Source: Takakia lepidozioides
Lineage: Eukaryota; Plantae; Bryophyta
DNA length: 64,000 nt
Direction: 5' to 3'
NCBI GenBank assembly: GCA_030704615.1
Contig: CM060732.1
Span: 66,278,001 to 66,342,000, forward strand
The position numbers were made by a program, and so were the translations under genes. A model generated the notes under the pieces. It worked only from the letters and a program-made list of their open reading frames with translations. It was not told where the DNA came from and searched no databases. Positions 23,062-57,500 of this stretch are shown piece after piece (position 1 is the stretch's first letter; every line of letters begins with the position of its first letter).

Positions 23062-25542
23062 CATGATAACAACTGCTTCTGAACGAGGGCAAAGAGAGGG
23101 AGTTCACAAAAACTCTTTTGGCTCTGGTGAGGATGTGAGGACACTATGCAAGGCAGGAAAACTGACAGAGGCACTGCACATTCTGAATCAAGGAGGCATT
23201 TTGGCAAACTCAAGTACTTATGTCTGTCTCTTACAGGAGTGCATCAAGATGAAAGGCCTAGCAGAGGGAAAGAAGGTGCACGCCCACATCTTGGAAAGTG
23301 GATTCAAGCCAAACATCTTCTTACAAAACACCCTCATCAACATGTATGCCAAGTGCGGGAGTGTTGTGGATGCACGCCTAGTGTTTGACAAAATGCCTGC
23401 ACGAAATATTTTTACATGGACTATAATGATGACAGGATATGCCAAGCATGGGTATGGTAGTGGGGCCTTTGAGATTTATGAGCGAATGAGACAGGAAGGG
23501 GTGATGATTGACCAAGTCACTTTTGTTTGGATTCTCAATGCGTGTGCCGGCCTGGCCGACCTGGAAAAGGGCAGAGATGTACACGCTCAGATCATCAAAG
23601 CTGGAATTGAATCAAGTATCATTCTGGACACTGCACTTGTGGCCATGTATGCCAAATGTGGGAGCATAAAAATGCAAGCCGAGTGTTTGACAACATGGCT
23701 CAAAGGAGTGTGGTCTCATGGAATGCGATGATTGCAGGATATGCCCAGCATGGGTGTGGTAGGGAGGCTCTAGAGATCTATGAGCGTATGGTACTGGAAA
23801 GGGTGACACCTGACAAGGTTACCTTCATCTGCATTCTCAATGCATGTGCTAGCATTGGAGCCCTAGACAAGGGCAAAGAGGTCCATGCTGACGTCATTGA
23901 GGCTGGGATTGTACCAGATATCATTCTGGAGAATACCCTTGTTGACATGTATGCCAAATGTGGGGACATAAAGGATGCGAGTCAAGTGTTCCACAGTATG
24001 TCTCAACGAGATGTGATCTCATGGTACACGATGATTGCCGGATATGCAAAACACAGGTGTGGTGGGGAGGCTTTGGAGAGCTTCAAGCAAATGGTACTGG
24101 AAGGGGTGAGGCCCAACAATGTTACGTACATTTCCGTTCTCAATGCATGTGGCAGCCTTGCAGCCCTGGAAAAGGGCCAAGAGGTGCACGCTGACTTCAT
24201 CAAAGCTGGAATTGTGCCAAATATCATTCTTTACACTGCACTTATTGCTATATATGCCAAATGCGGGAGTGTGAAGTATGCTAATCAAGTGTTTAATAGT
24301 ATGGGTGAACGAGATATTGTCTCGTGGAATGGGATGATTGCAGGATACGCTCAGCATGGGTGCGGTAGGGAGGCTTTGGAGACCTGTGAGCAAATGTTAC
24401 AGGAAGAAGTGATGCCCGACCAGGTCATGTTCATTTGCGTTCTGAATGCTTGTGCCAGCCTGGCAGCCCTAGACAAGGGCAAAGAGATCCAGATTGACAT
24501 CATCAAAGCTGGAATCGTGCCAAATGTCCTCCTGCAGAATGCCCTTGTGGACATGTTTGCCAGATGTGGGAATATAAAGGATGCGCGCCAAGTATTTGAG
24601 AATATGCCTCAACGAGATGTTGTCTCATGGAACGCAATGATCGCAGGGTATGCCCAGCATGGGTGTGATGAAGAGGCCCTTCAACTATTCAAACAAATGC
24701 AACAGGAAGGTTTTAAGCCGAATGGTATCACCTTTATATCTCTTCTTTCTGCTTGTAGCCATGTGGGCCTAGTGGATGAAGCCCGTCACTACTTTGATTC
24801 CATGAGTCGAGATCATGACCTCACTCCTACAGTCAAACATTTTGGCTGCATGGTTGACCTTCTTGGCCGTGCAGGGCAATTGGATGAGGCACATGATTTC
24901 ATCATAAAGATGCCAGTAAAGCCAAACACTGCAGTGTGGGGGGCCTTGCTTGGTGCCTGCAAAATTCATGGCAATGTGGAGGTGGCAGAGCATGCAGCAA
25001 CATGCCTTCTCAAGTGGGATGCTGAGGATGCTGCAACTTATGTGCTGCTATCAAACATCTATGCTGCAGCTGGCAGGTGAGAAGACACTGCAAAGGTGAG
25101 AAAGATGATGAATGTCAAAGGTATCAGACAGGAGCCTGGTCGCTCCTGCATTGAGGTCGACAATAGGATGCATACATTTGTGGTACACGATAAATTGCAT
25201 CCACAAATTGAGGAAATCCATGCCAAGCTAAGGAAATTGTCTGAGCAGATGAAGGCAGCTGGGTACGTGCCTGACACACACTATGTATTGTATGATGCGG
25301 AGGAGCAGCAGAAAGAATTTTCACTTTGCCACCACAGTGAGAAGCTGGCCATTGCCTTTGGGCTCATCAGCACACCCCCTGGGAGACCTCTTCGTCTTAT
25401 CAATATCCTTAGGGTGTGTGGCAACTGCCACACAGCCACCAAGTTCATCTCAAAGATTGTTGAGCGATCAATTGTTGTGCGGGATGCCAACCGCTTTCAT
25501 CACTTTCAAGATGGGGCTTGTTCTTGCAGGGATTACTGGTGA
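23062..25542 (+). pseudogene. PLS-E-DYW (DYW:PG type) PPR RNA-editing factor, disrupted
   Basis: PLS triplets, E domains, PG box (PGRSCIEV), HSEKLA, CGNCH and a terminal CSCRDYW. A 1-nt deletion in an A-run at ~23670 and TGA in place of the conserved Trp (GRW) at 25078-25080. Confidence 0.9.
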
Positions 25543-27346
25543 AACGAGCAACATTCATGAAAGAGTCTGTTGTTTAGTGGTTATGTAAAGAGTGAAGTGG
25601 AAACTGTGGCCTCACAAGATTGAAAAAGACGCTGCAATGTGCAACCTAGCCGAGCCTAGTTCTGAGGTGCAAAGATCTATCCATATTTTTTGATGCCGGA
25701 TCGAGGCATGGATGGAGTTGGACCAGATAAACTCAAGAGACCATGGATGAATAGCTGTACAAGAAACCTGAGTGGGTGGATGGTCATTTGGAGAAGCTGG
25801 ATGCAGCTAGGGGTCAGTATCATGAAATGCCAGAGATGGAGCTTTCTTCACACTGCATTCGTGCAGGCACTTTGGCACGCAGGGCTCTTTCCACAGGCTT
25901 TTTACTGCTAGGGCTCATGAAGATTGTTTTATGCCACCGGTATCATCATTGTTCCAGGCTCAGTATTTTCTCTTTCTTCACTGTGGTCAGCATTGCACAG
26001 CCCAAGTCGTGCCACCCTACCCTCCCTAGAACCTCTCTCGCCATCGATCCTACAACCCCAACAACAAAGTAAGTATTGGTAATTGTTATTGTTAGTAATT
26101 GTTATTTCAGTACTTATGTTTTCTCTCTTGGTAAGTTTTCCAAGTTTTGTGAGGAAGTTAATCCTTGTAATTGGAAAGTCTGTCCATATCAGTGTTGGGT
26201 TCAAAACTTCATATCCAGTTTTACGTAGGCATGCTGGACTACCTGTCTACATCCAATGGTTCCCTTCTCTCTGGCTCGTGTCCGGCTCTCTCCACCTCTA
26301 TCTCTTCCTCCCTAGCTTCGTACTCCATCGTCAAGAATTGGAGTGGGTTTAGAGTTTAGACTCACAAGGATGGACACAGCTCACGAAGGATGGTGCAACT
26401 GAGAATTGAGAGGAGATCATGGCAAGGGGACGGATTTGAATTAAAAAGGTGACGACAGGGGAGGATGGAGATGGTGTGGAGATGGTCACTGCCTACTGCC
26501 ATGTGGGAGCTGTGAGGTTGCAAGGTTAGTGATATAGTGCATAGTCACTACATATCACTATGAGATACGTTATCTTATGATGAGCTTATTGCCACAACCT
26601 TAGCTGGTCGGAGTCCCAAAAAATGAGGCCATGCAAAGGTATGAGACTGGTGAGGACAGCAGGGATGAGAGCACGGCAAGCAGACGGATTTGGTTTTGAA
26701 AACAGGTGACGACGGGGTGATGATGGAGATGGGGGATCGCAGACGTAGCACTACTGTGAACACTGTCTACTGCCCTGTCTGATGAGTGTGGAAGTGACTC
26801 ACTGATTACGACGTACGTAGAGATCACAAATGTACTAGCAACAGGACTCCCAATAGATTTACAGAGATTGACGCCTGTGTTTGGAGTAAGCTTATACAGG
26901 CATGATGAAACTGGTTAGTTAGGCACTATTACACGTGAGTCAGTGAAGGATGAGATCAGATCTGAAGAACCAGCTAGTGACTGATGTACTAATCAATCAC
27001 CAAATGGTAGGATATGAATGTAGGCAGAATAGAGTGTGCAATCAGAAGCCGTAATAGAGACAGAGGTCTATGCCATGGTATTGTTGACTGAACAGGGTGT
27101 CGACCAGAAGGTTGATAAGGTATTCCAGGATGACGCGCGGCACACAAAATTACACAACATGGAGTTCACCTGTGCAGCTCAGATAAATCACATATACAAA
27201 GTTGTAAATGAGATCAGTGGTGGTGTGCTGATGATATTTCCTCTTCCGCTGCAGTATTATTAGCATGCTGTGATCTAACTGGTGAAAGAGGGATGCGCAC
27301 AGGTCCAATTTCACCTACATTTCTTTGTAGATTGTTCCAAAGTTTA

Positions 27347-28476
27347 TCAGTCTCCAATGGGCCAAATTTCAAAGATCATCAAGAAGCGGATGGAAGGTTG
27401 GTACACCATCGAGATTGAGGAGAGTCTCATGAAGTGCTTTCTAGAATTTGTGTCCTGCCCTGCCAGCATGATTGTGTGAAGCCCCTGCAGCACTTGTTGC
27501 ATCGATGGCCGGTCCTGACCTCGCTCCGCCAAGCACTGTGCTGCCAGCTGTGCCACACGCCCTACAGATTGCATAGCTTCGAAGTCCCCAAATCTTACCT
27601 TCCCTGAGGACATCATGTACTCCAAACCTTCCACTAAATGGAGGTCAACAATAGCGTCTAGCTGCCCCTTCTCTATGTAGGGGATCGCCCAGGATACCAG
27701 TGCAAAAACCTCGCCATGTACACCATGTAGTGGTTTTCGAGAGGTGATCAACTCCAGCAACACCACCCCAAAGGAGTATATATCACTCTCCATCATTAGT
27801 TGACCAGTGCGAACGCACTCCGGGTCGATGTAGCCTACTGTCAAAGGTGTTTCGATGTCGCCTAGTGACAAAGGTGTTGAAACGATGTGTGGTATCTCTT
27901 GATACAATGAAAAACACCCAATTTTTGCAGTGAGTTTTTCATCCAATAGGATGCTATGAGTTGTCACATACCTGTGGCAGATGCCGTGAGAGGTATGTAG
28001 GTATGCCAAGCCCTCTGCAATCTCAGTTGCAATTCGCAAGCGCTGGCTCCAAACCAATTTTAGCCTTTCAGACCCCTTTCCATGCCAGTGGCCAAAGAGG
28101 CTACCCTGTGGCATGAACTCATAGACAAGAATTGGGACCTCGCCCTGTAGGCAGCATCCAAGGAGCTTCAACACATTCCGATGGTTGAAATTTTCGAGTT
28201 TCAGCACACCTTCATATTGCTGCAAAGACTTTCTGCTAAGGTCGTCATCATCCAGTTTCGTTACAGCCACATCCATCCCATTTTCTAGAGTACCTTTGTA
28301 TACTGTACCCAAAGAGCCCATGCCAAGTATGCGACCACCTGCAAACCTCTCGGTTGCCCTTTCCATCTCACGGATGGAAAACATGTTCTCTGTACTGGCT
28401 GCTACCTCAATCATTGGTTGATGGAATATTTTATCCATCTTTCGTCTTTGTAGCCATCGGACTGGAAGTTGAAGCC
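27347..28476 (-). CDS. RLK/Pelle-type pseudokinase domain, probably the last exon(s) of a tandem kinase gene
   Basis: FSIREMERAT, LGMGSLGTVYKG, GYIDPE and SDIYSFGVVLLELIT are present. The catalytic motifs are altered: VAVTK, HRY instead of HRD, CFS instead of DFG. Confidence 0.8.
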
Positions 28477-29069
28477 CTGCAAGTTTCACAGCCAACATTC
28501 TTAACGCATCAGCTATTGGTAGCATTCAAAGTATACTAAAGACTTGAATCCCAAGTTGAATTCTGAACTTGTTGCTGGTGCTGAGATTTTGTCGGTCTCT
28601 AAACAGTGTCGGACAAGACCAGAAGACTAGCAGATAAAGGAAGTTCTATATCCTCGGTAGCTGGGAGTATTGACACAACCGAAATAAGCCCATTACCTTT
28701 GCGAAAGAGTTTCGAGTCCAGTTGGCGTGTCTTCTCACCTCTTGATTGGTTGTTGCCGTCTGGTCTGCATGTGAAAAAACAAAGGCACGGGTAATCAGAG
28801 ATTCCTATGTAACAGAGAAAGTGGGAGCCTCTATGTACCCTGTGAGCTAGCACACTCTGGACAAGTCCCACTGAAAGCCCCAGAAGAACCAGTCATGCAG
28901 ACACAACATCCAATTACTTTTGCAGCTTATTACCAGCAGTAAACAAAGAGAAATGTACCTTAAATTCCAGCTAAAGTTGGGTAGCATACATTGGTAGAGA
29001 ATGAGCAAAATTTAGAAACACTTTAGTCCCAGCAAGCACACAATCAGTAAGTGATGTTGTCCAAGGTAC

Positions 29070-30592
29070 CTGGATGCATCCATCCACTGCATCACTCCGT
29101 CATGGGTCTTGTATGCAAACACGAATGGCTCAATCCAACTATCAGTCATTCCCAAGACTCGGCCTTTTGCATGCCTGAGCATTTTGCAATATCTGAAAAG
29201 CTTGGTCGGGACTGGGGTTGGATCTTCCAGCAGCTAGAAATGCAAAATCTCAAGTATGGTGGACAATAAGCTGGTAATTCTGGTCTTTCCCCGTGGACTG
29301 TGATTCTCTCCTGGATTTTCTGATTCTCCACATTTTCAAAGGGTGCTTTTCCTGTAAGGATCTCAAAGCATGTCATTGCAAAACTCCACACGTCAGCCTG
29401 CAGTGGGTATGATCGTCTACTAGAATTGGGCTCTTCCTCGTACCTGTCGTCTGATACTCCAAAAAGCTCCGGTGCTCTCCATTTCGTCGTACCAACCTTC
29501 CAAGTCTGATCCAGATTCGATGTGGAGCTCTTGAGATTTGTCTTGGCTGTACCAAAATCTGCTAGCTTCACATCCACATAGCCCTCAGTGGACTGTTCGG
29601 CAAGAGAGCTGGGCTTATACAGAATGTTACTGCACTTGAGGTCCCGGTGTGCCACCCCTTTGCTATGCAAGTATCGCATCCCCTTTGCCACTTGAAGCAT
29701 AATGTCGATCGCTACAAGCAGTGTGAATGGACTATCTGCCTTGCTTTTCTGCAATCTCTTCATCAGGGTCGAAAGGTCCCCGGTCGTTAGCTGCATAACA
29801 AGATTGGAGTTGTCATCCGTGTCCCAATAACACAACAATCGCACAATATGCGGGTGTTGAAGTCCTACCAGTATGGATGCCTCTTTCTGAAATACACTGT
29901 AAGCAAGCACTTTCAAAGCGCATCTTTTTTCCATCCATGTAACCTCCAGGACTGTTCCGTATCCACCCTGGCCCAGAACCCCATGATATGTATAATTGTG
30001 CAGTGATTCGTCTTCCTGCAGTTTTTCTATCCACGAAGAATAAGGAAGAGTCAATCTTTGATATAAATAGCCTGCAAGATAACAATCTTGGTCAAGTCCC
30101 CCTATACTAGTACTTGGTCTACTGACAGGCTCCAGTTTGGCAAGTAGCATCTTCTCATCCTCCAGGATCATCTTATGGAGATCATCTTTTGGCGTTGTTC
30201 GCTGAGTTTCATAATAATTCTCCCCTGCAGACTGTAAAAATGGAAAATCTTGGAGTCCCTCTTCTATCTGATGTGATGCTTTACCTTCCAGGCTGGTCTT
30301 CCGCATTGAAAAGGACACCAGATCAGTCCACCATTGTAGCTCGAATAGAAGCTCACCAAAGTCCTCTTTGGATTGTGCAATTGTAATTGCCACTAGGAGC
30401 CACTGCACACTGCAGCACTTTTCCACAAGAATCTCAGCCCTCTTCACCACATATTCAAGTTGTTTAAAAGCTGGCTGACATTGCTTCATGACTGTACTCT
30501 CCGATGTCTACAAGATTCTATTGCAAGGACCCATTCATAAGTCGTACTTTATCCATAGTTGCTAGGATAAACTGGAAGGAGTCTGCAGCCAT
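29070..30592 (-). CDS. N-terminal helical (4HB/HeLo-like) domain plus Raf/MLK-like Ser/Thr kinase; possibly pseudogenised
   Basis: Kinase motifs LGQGGYG, CALK, HRDLKCSN, DFG, WRAPE and DVWSFAM are intact. Helical N-terminus LEYVVKRAEILVEKC..WLLVAI..ELQWW. Lesions between ATG 30592 and ATG 30489, and a 1-nt A-run frameshift at ~29183. Confidence 0.8.
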
Positions 30593-31541
30593 GGTGTAGG
30601 AGTGGTGTATATACCACCAAGTGCACTAACGGAAGGTCCACCATAGAAGATTGCTCAAGTAAGAGCTGGGAATCCGAGACCAATTATTTGTACCATTGAT
30701 ACCCAGAGGGCTCACCAAGATCAATTATCACAGTTTTTGGAGAAGAGGCACGCGCAGCACTATGGTTGATTGAAATTCAACATATGACCCCTCCACATAT
30801 GACAAATTATACTAATCTGGATTGCAACCGAGAAAGAGTATGGAGTGCCAATGTTCAACCATCTGAATCAGGTGCTCTTCACTTGATTCCACATCTCTGT
30901 TAGAACTGCAAGACAAAATAGACAGACAGGAACAGATGGAAAACATATAATCAACCCATTGCAACTGGACCAGTTGTGATTGAGGAGAAACAACAGTCAT
31001 CTCAACTTCAGGCTCTAGATGGCTGCGAAAATCCTGTCTTCAATGGGGAACAAAGACAAGACATTTCATCCAGCAATCTCTGACTAATTTCAGGTGACTT
31101 CAGAGCTGCGCAAGAAAAAGACACAAACAGTGCACAATGGAGAACATAAACCCTGGAACATTCTCCCCAAAAAATGCCATGGAGGCTGGAGCACCTGACA
31201 GTACTAAGAGCCACGGGCTTTATTATGGTCCTGATTAAAAATCATTGGCAACTATCGATTGCACCTCCCCCTCACCTCCCTCAGCTTGCTTGACCTGCCA
31301 CGTCTAAACACTCCCTGGGCTGGCCCGGCCAAACTACTGAAGATACAAAATAGAGATGAACCCCTCACCGCCAGGTGGGCGAGCAAGCCGTGCTGTTGCA
31401 CTGAACTCCTGTGCTCACTCTTGTCTGCGCAGCACGCACGATTCGCCATTAATCTTTGAGAAGAGCATCCAGATATACACAAGATTTCAGAAGAGCATCC
31501 AGTCGTTGCAGGGATGGTCAACGCCGCGTTCCAACAAGGAA

Positions 31542-32165
31542 CATGGTATTACCTTTGTGAAGGTACTCTGTAAATCTTTCTAAACCCACGTGTTTCCGCT
31601 CGTGTAGAATGAGATCGTCGTCTGTCGTTCGCACCATCTTTGTTTCTTCAGAGCAGAGAGGGGCTGCGAGGTCAGTAGAGCTCATCGCTGGTGAGGGGCG
31701 TACGAAGCCCACAATTCTCAAAGATTTCGTGGCGCTGGCTCGACTTAGCACTCTGGATTTTCAACTGCGGACTCGTAGACACTCAGATCGACAATGGAAG
31801 GAAAAAATGGAGAAGGAAAGCCCATCGCCAAGTTGCGGGCCGTTTCTCACAACGGTATGCACATCCGAGAGTGAAATAGAAAGAGGGAGAAATAGAGGAA
31901 AAGAAATTCATCACAGCAAAACAAGCAGCAATCGCCATACGACAAAGTTTTCCGTCCCTTTCGAGCCGCCGCACCCAAAATCCTAGCAGTGAATGGGAGG
32001 GGAGCCTCACATCATGCCGCAGATTAGCTCGCCATCTGTTGGAGCTGAAATCTCCATCCAATTTGCCGGGACCAAGACCCTTGGCAACGATGACTTCAAC
32101 GCTTCCCCAGCCTCCGGGGGTACCGGAGCAAGGTGTGGACATGAAAATCCTGCGCACTTATCCTG
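31542..32165 (+). repeat. Second copy of segment 22270-22890
   Basis: Colinear alignment. Confidence 0.9.
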
Positions 32166-33231: not shown

Positions 33232-34245
33232 AGATTGTACTCATAAGACGTTGTTTGCCGTAGCCTTGTGGCCATTGACCCCGTGCCCAGTTTGAGCAGG
33301 AACAAAAGGGACAGAACCTACCTCTGTCAGGGGCTGACGTTGGTAGTAAGACTTACCTTCACATATAGAATTAATCCGGGTTTTCCAGATATCCTCTAGA
33401 AATCCCTTCACACGAGAATCAATCTGCTGTGTGTGATTTGGATTCTAAAGACTTAGCCTGGTTGGAGTTATCAACCCATATTGCAGATCCGTACTCCAAG
33501 GCAGGTCTAATAACGCCACAAAGCATGGTTTTCTTAACCTCACAGTTGACCCCTCTGCAGTGGAAAAATTTAGTGAGCCCCAGAGCTTTGCCCTTGCCAG
33601 TTTGAACAACTTTCCGGATATGTGCATCCCAATTACAATTGGAGGAAAACTCAACGCCCAGGTAAGTGTAGGAAGGGAGGACCGGGATCTCTTGGCTACC
33701 CCACTGCCACTTAAGATCACTTCCTCCCTCTCCTCTGTCGTTGAATGCTACCACTGCACATTTGCTGACATTAGCCTCTAGCCCCCAAAGATCAAAGTAT
33801 CTCTTCGTGCAATCAATCAACTCCTGGAGATTCCCCTATGCCTGCGAAGTCATCCGCAAACATAAGGGCTGGTATGGTGGTATCACCCACCCTGAACCCA
33901 AATCCCTCACTTTCCACATCCTCGAGGAGTTGATTGATGAAAACATTGAAGAGCAGAGGGGAGAGAGTACATCCTTGAGCTACACCTTGGTCTATGTCAA
34001 AGAAGTTGGACTTCTGTCCGTTAACAGTGACACAGCTTTTGGCGTGAGCATACAAGTTGTGGCCAACTCTCCACATCTTTCCCTTGATTCCACAAGACCA
34101 GAGGCGGAACCATAGGCCATCTCTCCACACTGTGTCATAAGCCTTTTTGACATCCAGGAAAAAAACATAAGTGGGTTTCCCTTCTTTTTTCCTTCCCTGG
34201 ATAATCTGGCTTAGAGTGAAGATATGATCCACACAGCCCCTGTTT
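33232..34245 (-). mobile_element. LINE copy retaining the RT core, with the 3' end fused by internal deletion
   Basis: FLDVKKAYDTV, QGCTLSPLLF, LMFADD and YTYLGV. The junction at ~33440 joins the 3' end to the mid-ORF. Confidence 0.9.
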
Positions 34246-34414
34246 AGATGAGAAAGGCAATTGGAAGCTTGCAAATTCCTCATAATCTTGTAGTTCTTGC
34301 AGGCAGTTAGCAAATGAGGACTTCGACAGGCTTTTTTCTCAGATACTTCGCAGTGGTGGCACGGCAGGTTGGCTAAGGTGAGCTATCTACATTGAGGAGA
34401 AAGATTTTGTCATG

Positions 34415-55500: not shown

Positions 55501-57500
55501 TCAGACTGAGCGCTGGAAGGGGAGCGGCCGGCGCTGGGTGGCAATGGACTTGAGAGGGGTGAGCATGGGCGTCAATCCGCCGCTGGAGAAGCGCATGTCG
55601 ATGTCCTCGCAGCGCTGGCCTCGGGCGGGAGCCCAGTGGAAGCTGTGCACGAGATTGCCCACAGCGATGCACAGCAGGGAAGTGCCCAGGTTTGCACCGG
55701 GGCAGGATCTGCGGCCGACTCCGAAGGGGAATATGCGCATTTGTGGGTCCGAGAGCAGCGCCAGGTTGGAGGTCTCCCACCGCTCGGGCCTGAACACCAG
55801 AGGGTCGGGCCAGATTTTGGAGTTGATGCCCAGCTCGATGTTGCTCACCATCACTTGCGTGCCCGCGGGTATATCGTAGCCCATCACTTTGGTTTGCGAT
55901 ATGCTCGTGCGTGGCACTCCGAATGGACCGGCAGGGTGCAGGCGGAAGATCTCCTTGATAACGCACTTAAGGTAGTGCAGATTAGGCACATCTGAATCTT
56001 TTACGATGTGGTCGATGCCAACCACGCTGTCGAGCTCTTTCTGTAGTTTTTGCTGCACTTGAGGATGGCGCACTATCTCTGCTATTGCCCACTCAGTATG
56101 ATTCACGGGCAAATCCAATCCGGACCACATCAAATCCTGCATAACATTACACGAGAGGCTTGCGCAGTCAGAAAAGCACGGGTGCTCATCCGGCCACACC
56201 TTCAAGGATCGAAACATGCCAGTCTGTTGCAAGCATACTGCCTTTCCAAGGATTAGGATTCATCGACCAAGACGTACACTGTACAAGAAATTCAAAATGG
56301 GTCAATCGGTTCTATTTCCAATGCTTACAAGAATCAGCGCCTTGATGGTGATGTCCTCCAAAAGTTCCCCACCGTTCTCGCCAGGAAGATCTAGCAGCAC
56401 GTCCACGAAGTCATGAGTGCGAGTCTTGGACTCAGAAACCGTGTCACCATGTGCCCGCTGTTTCTTGGCTGCGCGGTGCTCGTCAACAATGGCTTGCAGT
56501 TTCACGTCCAATGCCACATGTACCTGTGGAGGCAGCAACGTTCAGGTCCAATTTATTATTTTTAGTTGTCCGGTTGAGCAGATCAGATTGGAAATCGACA
56601 TCCAACACAAACTCTCACAATTTTGAAGCTCGGAAGGCTCTTACCACACAAGAGTCTGAATCAGACCGACAGACTTGATCAAATTTCAAGGTCATGGACT
56701 CGGCATGGATGGGGAGGTTTTTCAATGGCCAGTGTACATACCCACTTCACCTTCTTTTTGTAACCTTGTAAGTCCAAGGGTGCAAGCCAAGGAACGAAGT
56801 CGCCGATGTTCATGACGCCAAATAGTTCAAACGATTCCATGAGCAGGCGCATCACGTCTTGGGTGTCGTCTTGATCGGCCGAATGAGTGCCGAAGTATTT
56901 CTTGCCCAAGATCATGTCAGTCAAGATGTTCATGCTGAAGTTCTCAATCTTGTGTCTGACGTCCACTTCGGCCCCTTTCTTGCTCGTCTGCGATACAGCC
57001 TCCAACATTTCACAGGCTTCCTCCTCCCTTCTGGGTGCAAAGGATTCTACCCGCTTGTTAGAGAGCAACTCCATTACACAGATCTTACGCATGGCTCGCC
57101 AGTGCTCACCAGGAGGTGCCATGATGAAGTCGTGCACGCCGTATGTCAAGTACTGGCCACAGATGGTCTTCGGACGCGAACTGAAGACATCGTCCTGCTC
57201 CTTCATGATTTCGTTCAGGATCTTCGGGTCGCTGGTGATGAGAGCCGGCAGAGAGCCGAGCCTGAGGAACACGATGGGGCCATACTTTCTGGTCATTTCC
57301 GCCACCGTGAGATGTGGCTTGGCCCCCAGACTGAGGATGTTGCCCACAATGGGCCATGGCCTTGGTCCCGGAGGATAATTGAGCTTGGGTTGGCGAGCAT
57401 GTCGGATGATCGCGACCAGCACAACTGCAGCTACTGCTACCGACACCTGCATCCATCCGAAGCTCGGAAGCCTCACAGACTGCAAGAGCGAGGAATCCAT
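55501..57500 (-). CDS. Cytochrome P450, CYP71 clan, CYP703-like; exons 57500-56742, 56523-56329, 56136-55501
   Basis: TM anchor, PPGPRPWPIVGN, QDDVFSSRPKT (CYP703-like), EIFR, RPERW and FPFGVGRRSCPG. Two phase-0 GT-AG introns. Confidence 0.92.

Follow-up and report, generated by a model that had tools for sequence, protein, structure and literature searches.

Introduction

Plant MLKL proteins such as AtMLKL1-3 (structures 6KA4 and 6LBA), a family described across seed plants, combine a DUF1221/HeLo-type four-helix bundle and a brace with a pseudokinase and a serine-rich tail; they form auto-repressed tetramers, and the bundle together with the brace is cytotoxic (10.1101/681015). The cereal tandem kinase proteins (TKPs), among them Rpg1, WTK1/Yr15, WTK3/Pm24/RWT4, Sr60 and Sr62TK, carry two kinases per chain, a kinase and a pseudokinase, are of fusion origin and have no membrane helix (PMC8761531, PMC6170490, PMC12365797). 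Here we describe a gene on the minus strand of a 64,000-nucleotide stretch of the Takakia lepidozioides genome (assembly GCA_030704615.1, contig CM060732.1, positions 66,278,001 to 66,342,000), called the window in its full length, with all coordinates given within it. In this gene, a bundle, a brace and a kinase of the plant-MLKL lineage are followed by a pseudokinase resembling wall-associated kinases (WAK-like) of the receptor-like kinase (RLK)/Pelle group. By analogy with the described systems, we propose, with a probability of roughly 0.55, that the intact product would execute cell death as an MLKL, with a kinase decoy integrated into the same chain, and would act as an intracellular immune receptor. 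This reading is supported by the splicing observed in run X5, the match of the N-terminal profile to MLKL, the catalytic losses that kinase 2 shares with expressed copies, the recurrence of such fusions and published precedents.

The TKPs functionally studied and named in PMC8761531 pair two RLK/Pelle subfamilies and have no executor domain. [quoted passage not shown] WTK3 and Sr62TK depend on such a linked NLR, whereas the gene described here places a tyrosine kinase-like (TKL) and an RLK/Pelle kinase behind an MLKL bundle, with no NLR in the 64-kb window. The model for the mechanism that we propose is provided by wheat Pm13 and R3AK, in which a four-helix bundle is coupled to a catalytically intact kinase and death proceeds through the bundle; both, however, possess one kinase only, the Pm13 kinase belongs to the DLSV receptor-kinase group with a bundle that clusters apart from DUF1221, and R3AK requires a sensor NLR (PMC10951266; 10.64898/2026.08.07.743466). 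R3AK kills via helix 1 and becomes auto-active once its kinase site is perturbed (10.64898/2026.08.07.743466). Tandem kinases of several fusion types, one from Physcomitrella included (PMC6170490), and MLKL kinase fusions of wheat (PMC10951266) are already known. Our literature search gave no description of an MLKL-plus-RLK tandem kinase from a non-seed plant; the atlas of Reveguk et al. 2025 (2,682 proteins) lay outside this search and may list the models discussed below. The parts and the logic are each known, and it is their combination that is new, not the kind of system. How tandem kinases trigger immunity, and whether any of them act without an NLR, is an open question (PMC12365797), and direct evidence of effector-triggered receptor immunity is missing for non-flowering plants (PMC11218826). 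A natural MLKL-kinase-pseudokinase fusion makes both questions testable in one construct.

Transcript structure

The listing of open reading frames (ORFs) gives two kinase ORFs on the minus strand, 30489-29146 and 28525-27347, with Pfam E values of 6e-45 and 1e-37. A sequence-only reading of the locus had proposed that both belong to one spliced gene, with a phase-2 donor at 29070, a 69-nt linker exon at 28764-28696, and a phase-1 acceptor at 28477 with a CTGAT motif upstream. Canonical splice signals are present at all of these borders (GT donor at 29069, AG acceptor ending at 28765, GT donor at 28696, AG acceptor ending at 28477), the intron phases, 2 and then 1, keep the reading frame through the linker exon, and the CTGAT lies about 31 nt ahead of the last acceptor. 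Both expected junctions were found in X5, a run from a different sample with the same species label. The joint 29070>28764 skips 305 nt at a depth of 65.8 and the joint 28697>28476 skips 220 nt at a depth of 56.4, both with CT..AC on the plus strand; the linker exon exists as predicted, but comprises 68 nt and ends at 28697. A third joint, 30904-31369, removes a 463-nt intron of the 5' untranslated region (UTR) and has 41 letters on its exon-1 side. The record of X5 only guesses RNA, but the joints, the bin depths that leave no room for coverage of either coding intron, and the empty bins flanking the gene indicate that the run is RNA.

The resulting gene starts with a 5' non-coding exon (31369..31409, upstream limit not fixed), which is followed by the GT..AG intron of the 5' UTR (30906..31368). 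Exon 2 (29070..30905) holds the rest of the 5' UTR, the start codon at 30592 and the entire MLKL module with bundle, brace, kinase 1 and tail, and has single-exon equivalents in Ceratodon and Sphagnum. The phase-2 intron (28765..29069, 305 nt), the linker exon (28697..28764, phase 2 to phase 1) and the phase-1 intron (28477..28696, 220 nt) lead to the last exon (26862..28476, 3' end approximate), which contains a basic juxtamembrane-like stretch, kinase 2, a C-terminal tail and the 3' UTR. The Logan contigs of X5 are short; because the 68-nt exon belongs to both joints, which have comparable depths, a single transcript is nevertheless strongly supported, and with it one four-exon gene that encodes both kinases in one protein. 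Two separate neighbouring genes are barely conceivable: ORF finders do give two ORFs and no contig covers both kinases, but the joints, at depths of 66 and 56, share one exon, and kinase 2 has no alternative 5' end in X5. The two kinases thus stand in one polypeptide, as in TKPs, with in-phase joints in X5 and continuous ORFs in homologues. The intact product would have about 910 aa, as summed from the lengths of its pieces, and is predicted to be a soluble protein with neither an ectodomain nor a membrane helix. At 30864-31288, an X5 contig of low depth (7.5) runs through the 5' UTR intron, which represents a retained intron or an alternative 5' end, and the UTR portion of exon 2 contains six short upstream ORFs.

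The MLKL-type module

The N-terminus begins with an amphipathic helix of 24 codons (30521..30592, minus strand), which corresponds to helix 1 of a four-helix bundle and fits positions 10-27 of the family profile weakly (E 6e-4, probability 28%). Bundle helices 3-4 and the brace, of the DUF1221/AtMLKL type, are encoded at 30007..30489 on the minus strand and align to the family profile with a probability of 99.7% (hhalign, E 4e-27). The N-terminal family, found in moss, lycophyte and fern proteins, matched AtMLKL2 (6LBA, E 2e-12) and AtMLKL3 (6KA4, E 2e-10) when its profile was compared with solved structures, and nothing else fell under 0.07. The alignment to AtMLKL spans residues ~16-225 and includes the brace, the helices of which are predicted as well. 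Among the 91 family members, Pfam matches were obtained to DUF1221 (24), MLKL_N (7) and RPW8 (6). The full N-terminus of the Ceratodon homologue P0253, which shares the architecture of the window gene, was modelled with a pLDDT of 89, and the fold ranking of this model placed human MLKL first (Z 12.2, rmsd 3.1, 139 aligned residues), AtMLKL3 second (Z 11.3, rmsd 4.2, 199 aligned) and mouse MLKL third (Z 10.2). The helical, 4HB/HeLo-like N-terminus that had been read from the sequence, and for which a profile and structure comparison with MLKL had been suggested, is thus borne out at the level of the family.

Kinase 1 (29182..29994, minus strand) was assigned to the plant-MLKL lineage within the TKL group by Pfam, profile search against solved structures and motif reading. 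All of its catalytic motifs are intact (CALK, QKEA, HRDLKCSN, DFG and APE). It had been described as an intact Raf-like kinase; the intact state and the TKL group stand, but its best solved relatives are the AtMLKLs (6KA4, 6LBA, E 1e-35), with Roco4, Raf and MLK1 ranking lower. In the tree, kinase 1 falls into a supported clade with Sphagnum and Ceratodon proteins that are 41-49% identical to it. Since kinase 1 belongs to the plant-MLKL (AtMLKL/DUF1221) lineage, the bundle, the brace and kinase 1 constitute one ancient module, a plant MLKL that by sequence is still an enzyme. Compared with AtMLKL1-3, the bundle (at family level), the brace and the kinase lineage are homologous, whereas kinase 1 keeps every catalytic motif instead of being a pseudokinase, and an RLK-type pseudokinase takes the place of the serine-rich tail. 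AtMLKL-type proteins, known as seed-plant pseudokinases, thereby extend to an expanded family in mosses, a lycophyte and a fern that is catalytically intact by sequence.

An intact kinase next to a pseudokinase also suits a non-immune signalling protein, in which kinase 2 would act as an allosteric regulator or as a scaffold tying an active MLKL-type kinase to receptor-kinase complexes, while the bundle would serve multimerisation only. Regulation within kinase-pseudokinase pairs is widespread, and the immune role assigned to these genes is drawn from analogy; moreover, kinase 1 is intact, unlike that of the seed-plant DUF1221 MLKLs (10.1101/681015). A large lineage-specific expansion, many independent fusions with partners of an immune type and a multiply broken natural allele would, however, be unusual for a developmental regulator, and we regard this alternative as distinctly unlikely.

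The receptor-kinase-derived exon

Kinase 2 (27470..28384, minus strand) was identified by searches, tree and motif reading as an intronless WAK/WAKL-like RLK/Pelle pseudokinase. Its motifs read VAVT, HRY and CFS, with Gly at the position of the alphaC Glu, and consequently the beta3 Lys, the alphaC Glu, the HRD Asp, the catalytic-loop Asn and DFG are lost; the sequence-only reading had named the VAIK Lys, the HRD Asp and DFG among these losses, and correctly so. The top solved matches are the RLK/Pelle kinases SYMRK, FERONIA and Pto, and the closest proteins are WAK-like kinases of mosses and Selaginella, at 39-46% identity. Separate trees had been recommended for the two kinases; in that of kinase 2, it groups with moss and Selaginella WAKL proteins (SH-aLRT 85) on a long branch (1.49), in a reference set biased to its own best matches, whereas kinase 1 falls with moss MLKL-type kinases. 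The locus is thus a fusion of two different kinase groups, TKL (plant-MLKL) and RLK/Pelle, in a non-seed plant, as had been stated. Like its WAK-like relatives, the kinase exon is intronless and entered in phase 1, and the last exon retains the basic stretch located behind the membrane helix of these receptors. The helix itself is absent, and no ectodomain or transmembrane helix was found in either the last exon or the linker exon. The last exon has thus added to the MLKL module a WAK-like pseudokinase deprived of ectodomain, membrane helix and catalytic residues, and a short linker exon, phase 2 to phase 1, makes the connection.

At the DFG position, Gly stands in place of Asp in the copies of X5 and X6 and in a paralogue, and the Thr of VAVT is unchanged among the differences listed for an X5 contig. 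As this Gly is common to the expressed copies and the paralogue, kinase 2 had most likely become a pseudokinase before the lesions described below arose. Mere pseudogene decay was considered as the cause of the catalytic loss and rejected, as the loss is shared with expressed copies. The reading frame of kinase 2 is still open, and its fold is complete.

One X5 contig at 28213-28252, around the beta3-alphaC region of kinase 2, shows 9 base differences in 40 nt that alter 8 codons, 7 of them non-synonymously, compared with 8 differences in 737 nt of kinase 1. It may reflect a hypervariable surface, gene conversion or another paralogue; by their position, such changes would suit a surface under pathogen pressure.

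Fusions in other genera

A search of bryophyte genomes for the same architecture had been called for, and the domain order of bundle, MLKL-type kinase and RLK/Pelle kinase does occur elsewhere, in the Ceratodon models KC19_3G076400, KC19_12G027000 and KC19_2G198300 and in Sphagnum CY35_15G004200, so the layout is not unique to the window. The proteins P0296 and P0299 are continuous Logan ORFs with this order, DUF1221 matches and degenerate second kinases, and partial examples are given by one Pteridium transcript and one more Ceratodon model. Across these full-length relatives, kinase 1 is only 41-49% identical to that of the window. In both KC19_3G076400 and CY35_15G004200, the MLKL module is a single exon with a phase-2 donor at its end, and a short exon with a phase-1 intron behind it leads on to the RLK part. 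The second kinase of the former also reads VAVT, whereas that of the latter is catalytically intact; among the eight RLK-type partner kinases tabulated other than that of the window, five are without at least one catalytic residue. A kinase-pseudokinase pair of fusion origin, the second hallmark of TKPs, is found in the window gene as well.

The second kinases of Ceratodon and Sphagnum contain several introns and cluster separately from the intronless kinase 2 of the window. On the kinase-1 tree, fusion to an RLK kinase requires 7 changes, of which at least 6 are forced by supported branches, and this points to at least 6 independent fusions; the label is not clearly clustered on the tree (46 of 500 shuffles as low). 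RLK kinase exons often start in phase 1. The simplest reading is that RLK kinase exons were captured repeatedly through a phase-1 junction. Other moss modules of the MLKL type (P0375, P0298, P0344, P0322, P0300, P0244 and P0249) are doubled or fused to other domains; in mosses as a whole, the partners include NB-ARC, TIR-NLR and L-lectin RLK (with the module behind in the latter two), LRR, ARM, GIL1/IRKI and several different RLK kinases. Ceratodon is a transformable moss and has intact models of the same layout.

Several minor observations belong here. Moss kinase-NLRs may carry an overlooked DUF1221-like bundle ahead of their kinase, as the family suggests. KC19_3G076400 (L001) has an apparent counterpart in another strain, M758_3G077300 (P0034), annotated with 615 aa and without the second kinase, which represents either an annotation difference or a presence/absence polymorphism of the fused domain. 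A metagenome scan with kinase 1 yielded three distant loci, none with a second kinase, and there is no second copy of either kinase within the 64-kb window. When 30145-30489 was used as a query against the protein collection for the N-terminus of the expressed allele, no candidate was obtained.

Allelic state and related copies

The window copy itself is broken. An in-frame stop lies at 30518..30520, where, as judged from the ORF and the spacing in homologues, about 10 codons of the region of the family motif L-N-x-x-Q-C are apparently gone; the distance from helix 1 to the Cys is 14 residues, compared with 18-32 (median 23) in 82 homologues, and about 30 nt were probably lost near this stop. 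At 30494, a 35-nt deletion relative to X5 and X6 causes a frameshift, and restoring the 35 nt, worked out by hand, joins the frame from the start at 30592 to the main ORF. The X5 and X6 sequences have a net 31 extra nt within 30494-30695, the exact placement of which is not given by the data. At the end of kinase 1, a 1-nt deletion at 29188..29189 shifts the frame; the missing base is A on the plus strand (T pair on the coding strand), and an extra base is present behind 29187 in X5 (at all depth), X6 and the paralogue and absent from the X2 contig matching the window. With the base restored, the frame reads D-I-C-K-M-L-R-H-A-K, which fits the family motif C-x-M-L-x-x-A-K. The sequence-only reading had anticipated this missing base and its early end of kinase 1, but had placed it in the A-run at 29183, which is ruled out, as the extra base sits about 5 bases away. 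Beyond it, in the shifted frame, lies a conserved post-kinase tail (29070..29187), 44% identical over 34 aa to Ceratodon P0380 and with a motif common to homologues. Kinase 2 contains a 27-nt in-frame duplication in its activation segment (27842..27878, a 10-nt direct repeat spaced 27), which appears as 27-nt gaps in X5 and X6. Finally, a 1-nt deletion at 27410..27411 exchanges the last 13 codons for another tail: in X5 and X6, the full depth carries an extra base behind 27410, and the alternative frame stops after 13 codons.

In X2, the DNA run of the source sample, no differences from the window occur over 28273-29217 and 30142-31786. Inspection of the reads at about 29183 and 30490-30540 had been advised, and because the X2 contigs are identical to the window at 29188, 30494 and 30520, these lesions are present in the source DNA. 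Position 27410 is not covered by any listed X2 piece, and a depth of about 26 without an extra base points the same way. An intact gene spoiled by assembly errors is ruled out by the X2 identity across the three positions and shares the negligible probability of the two-gene explanation. The reading frame of the source individual is broken by a stop and three frameshifts, and the window allele is a pseudogene or null allele, with more lesions than the 5' ones from which it had been suspected to be dead. The expressed copies are without the three deletions at 30494, 29188 and 27410. A natural null allele alongside an expressed one offers a ready comparison, and the accumulated lesions are in keeping with birth-and-death turnover as seen in resistance genes.

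The paralogue is present in X2 as well; its kinase 1 differs from that of the window at 108 of 767 nt, an identity of about 86%, and one of its DNA contigs connects the donor region at 29067 with the acceptor region at 28498. In X5 and X6, the paralogue departs from the window sequence at the same donor (29070) into a similar linker sequence, and it shares the outer splice sites with the window gene. These copies bear on a further explanation, a neutral chimera, in which an MLKL gene and a decaying WAK-like neighbour became connected by read-through and splicing and the locus drifts to a pseudogene in all samples. The window allele with its at least 4 lesions, the ambiguous 5' end of X5 and X6, the long kinase-2 branch (1.49) and an adjoining frameshifted PPR-DYW gene would agree with such drift. 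However, splicing in X5 is efficient at high depth, three of the breaks are absent from expressed copies, the paralogue, although diverged by about 14%, retains the donor, the acceptor and a homologous linker exon, kinase 2 has kept its open frame and whole fold, and the architecture recurs in other genera, which together make a neutral chimera very unlikely. Run X7, a plant metagenome, has short contigs that match kinase 2 and the 5' UTR at 95-99% identity, and this sample contains the same or a sister species.

Proposed model of function

As an executor with an integrated decoy, the protein at rest would form an oligomer like that of AtMLKL, in which the brace and kinase 1 keep the bundle buried. 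Kinase 2 would be the bait, either as a decoy for effectors with which pathogens attack receptor kinases or as a sensor of the state of such kinases; its binding or modification would disturb kinase 1, the switch, and free helix 1. The freed bundle, as the executor, would form a membrane channel leading to cell death or calcium entry. With sensor and executor in one chain, a partner NLR, as used by cereal tandem kinases, would not be needed.

Several points weigh against this proposal. Helical bundles may reach Z values of 10-12 through chance, and the sequence profile therefore bears most of the weight of the MLKL assignment; the window's own N-terminal piece, without helices 1-2, had no Pfam match and only generic helical matches in the fold search. 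No single read or contig covers both kinases of the window copy. The approximately unbiased (AU) test did not reject a single origin of the second kinases of the window and of Ceratodon and Sphagnum (p 0.13), and the divergent beta3-alphaC contig may derive from another paralogue. Taken as one coding block, the 31 extra nt would leave the expressed allele out of frame as well; split as 30 nt and 1 nt in the UTR, they would leave it intact. X6 has no substitution that removes the stop at 30520, and the 5' end of the expressed allele is ambiguous. As regards function, the non-seed-plant members are known from sequence alone, and in AtMLKLs immunity is separable from cell death (10.1101/681015).

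The same protein might instead be the sensor half of a pair of tandem kinase and NLR, or a helper downstream of an NLR or TIR signal, with kinase 2 as a docking or relay surface for the NLR and a bundle that only oligomerises or is activated in trans. WTK3/RWT4 and Sr62TK require a linked NLR, with which their second kinase makes contact (PMC12365797); for R3AK and AtMLKL, an NLR or TIR signal lies upstream (10.64898/2026.08.07.743466); and the moss fusions of the module include those with NB-ARC and TIR-NLR. Nevertheless, no match to NB-ARC, TIR or LRR occurs anywhere in the 64-kb window and the protein has a candidate executor domain of its own; we regard this alternative as rather unlikely. 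If the executor-decoy reading is extended to the family, catalytically active MLKLs may serve non-seed plants as a modular chassis for immunity that repeatedly captures receptor-kinase exons, lectins, ARM and NB-ARC as integrated sensors, and the family would be a singleton, NLR-independent receptor that unites decoy, switch and pore-forming executor in a single chain, and a missing link between animal and plant MLKL and cereal tandem kinases. We put this wider view forward tentatively, as one that may well prove wrong.

Flanking sequences

The gene adjoins a second pseudogene, a PLS-type PPR-E-DYW gene at 22757-25542 on the plus strand, whose frame shifts near 23656-23731 and meets a stop at 25080. 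A duplicated block of about 620 nt (22265-22887 and 31537-32163), with pieces 85-100% identical and copies 9.28 kb apart, covers the 5' end of the PPR gene; its second copy (31537-32163) lies head-to-head directly upstream of the first exon of the kinase gene and may share or supply a promoter. Decayed pieces resembling the reverse transcriptase of non-LTR retrotransposons are present on the minus strand at 12530-14184 and 33419-34313, the former with an RVT_1 match for 13348-14184 and the latter recognised by eye. A cytochrome P450 gene, in two ORFs, is located at 55501-57500 on the minus strand.

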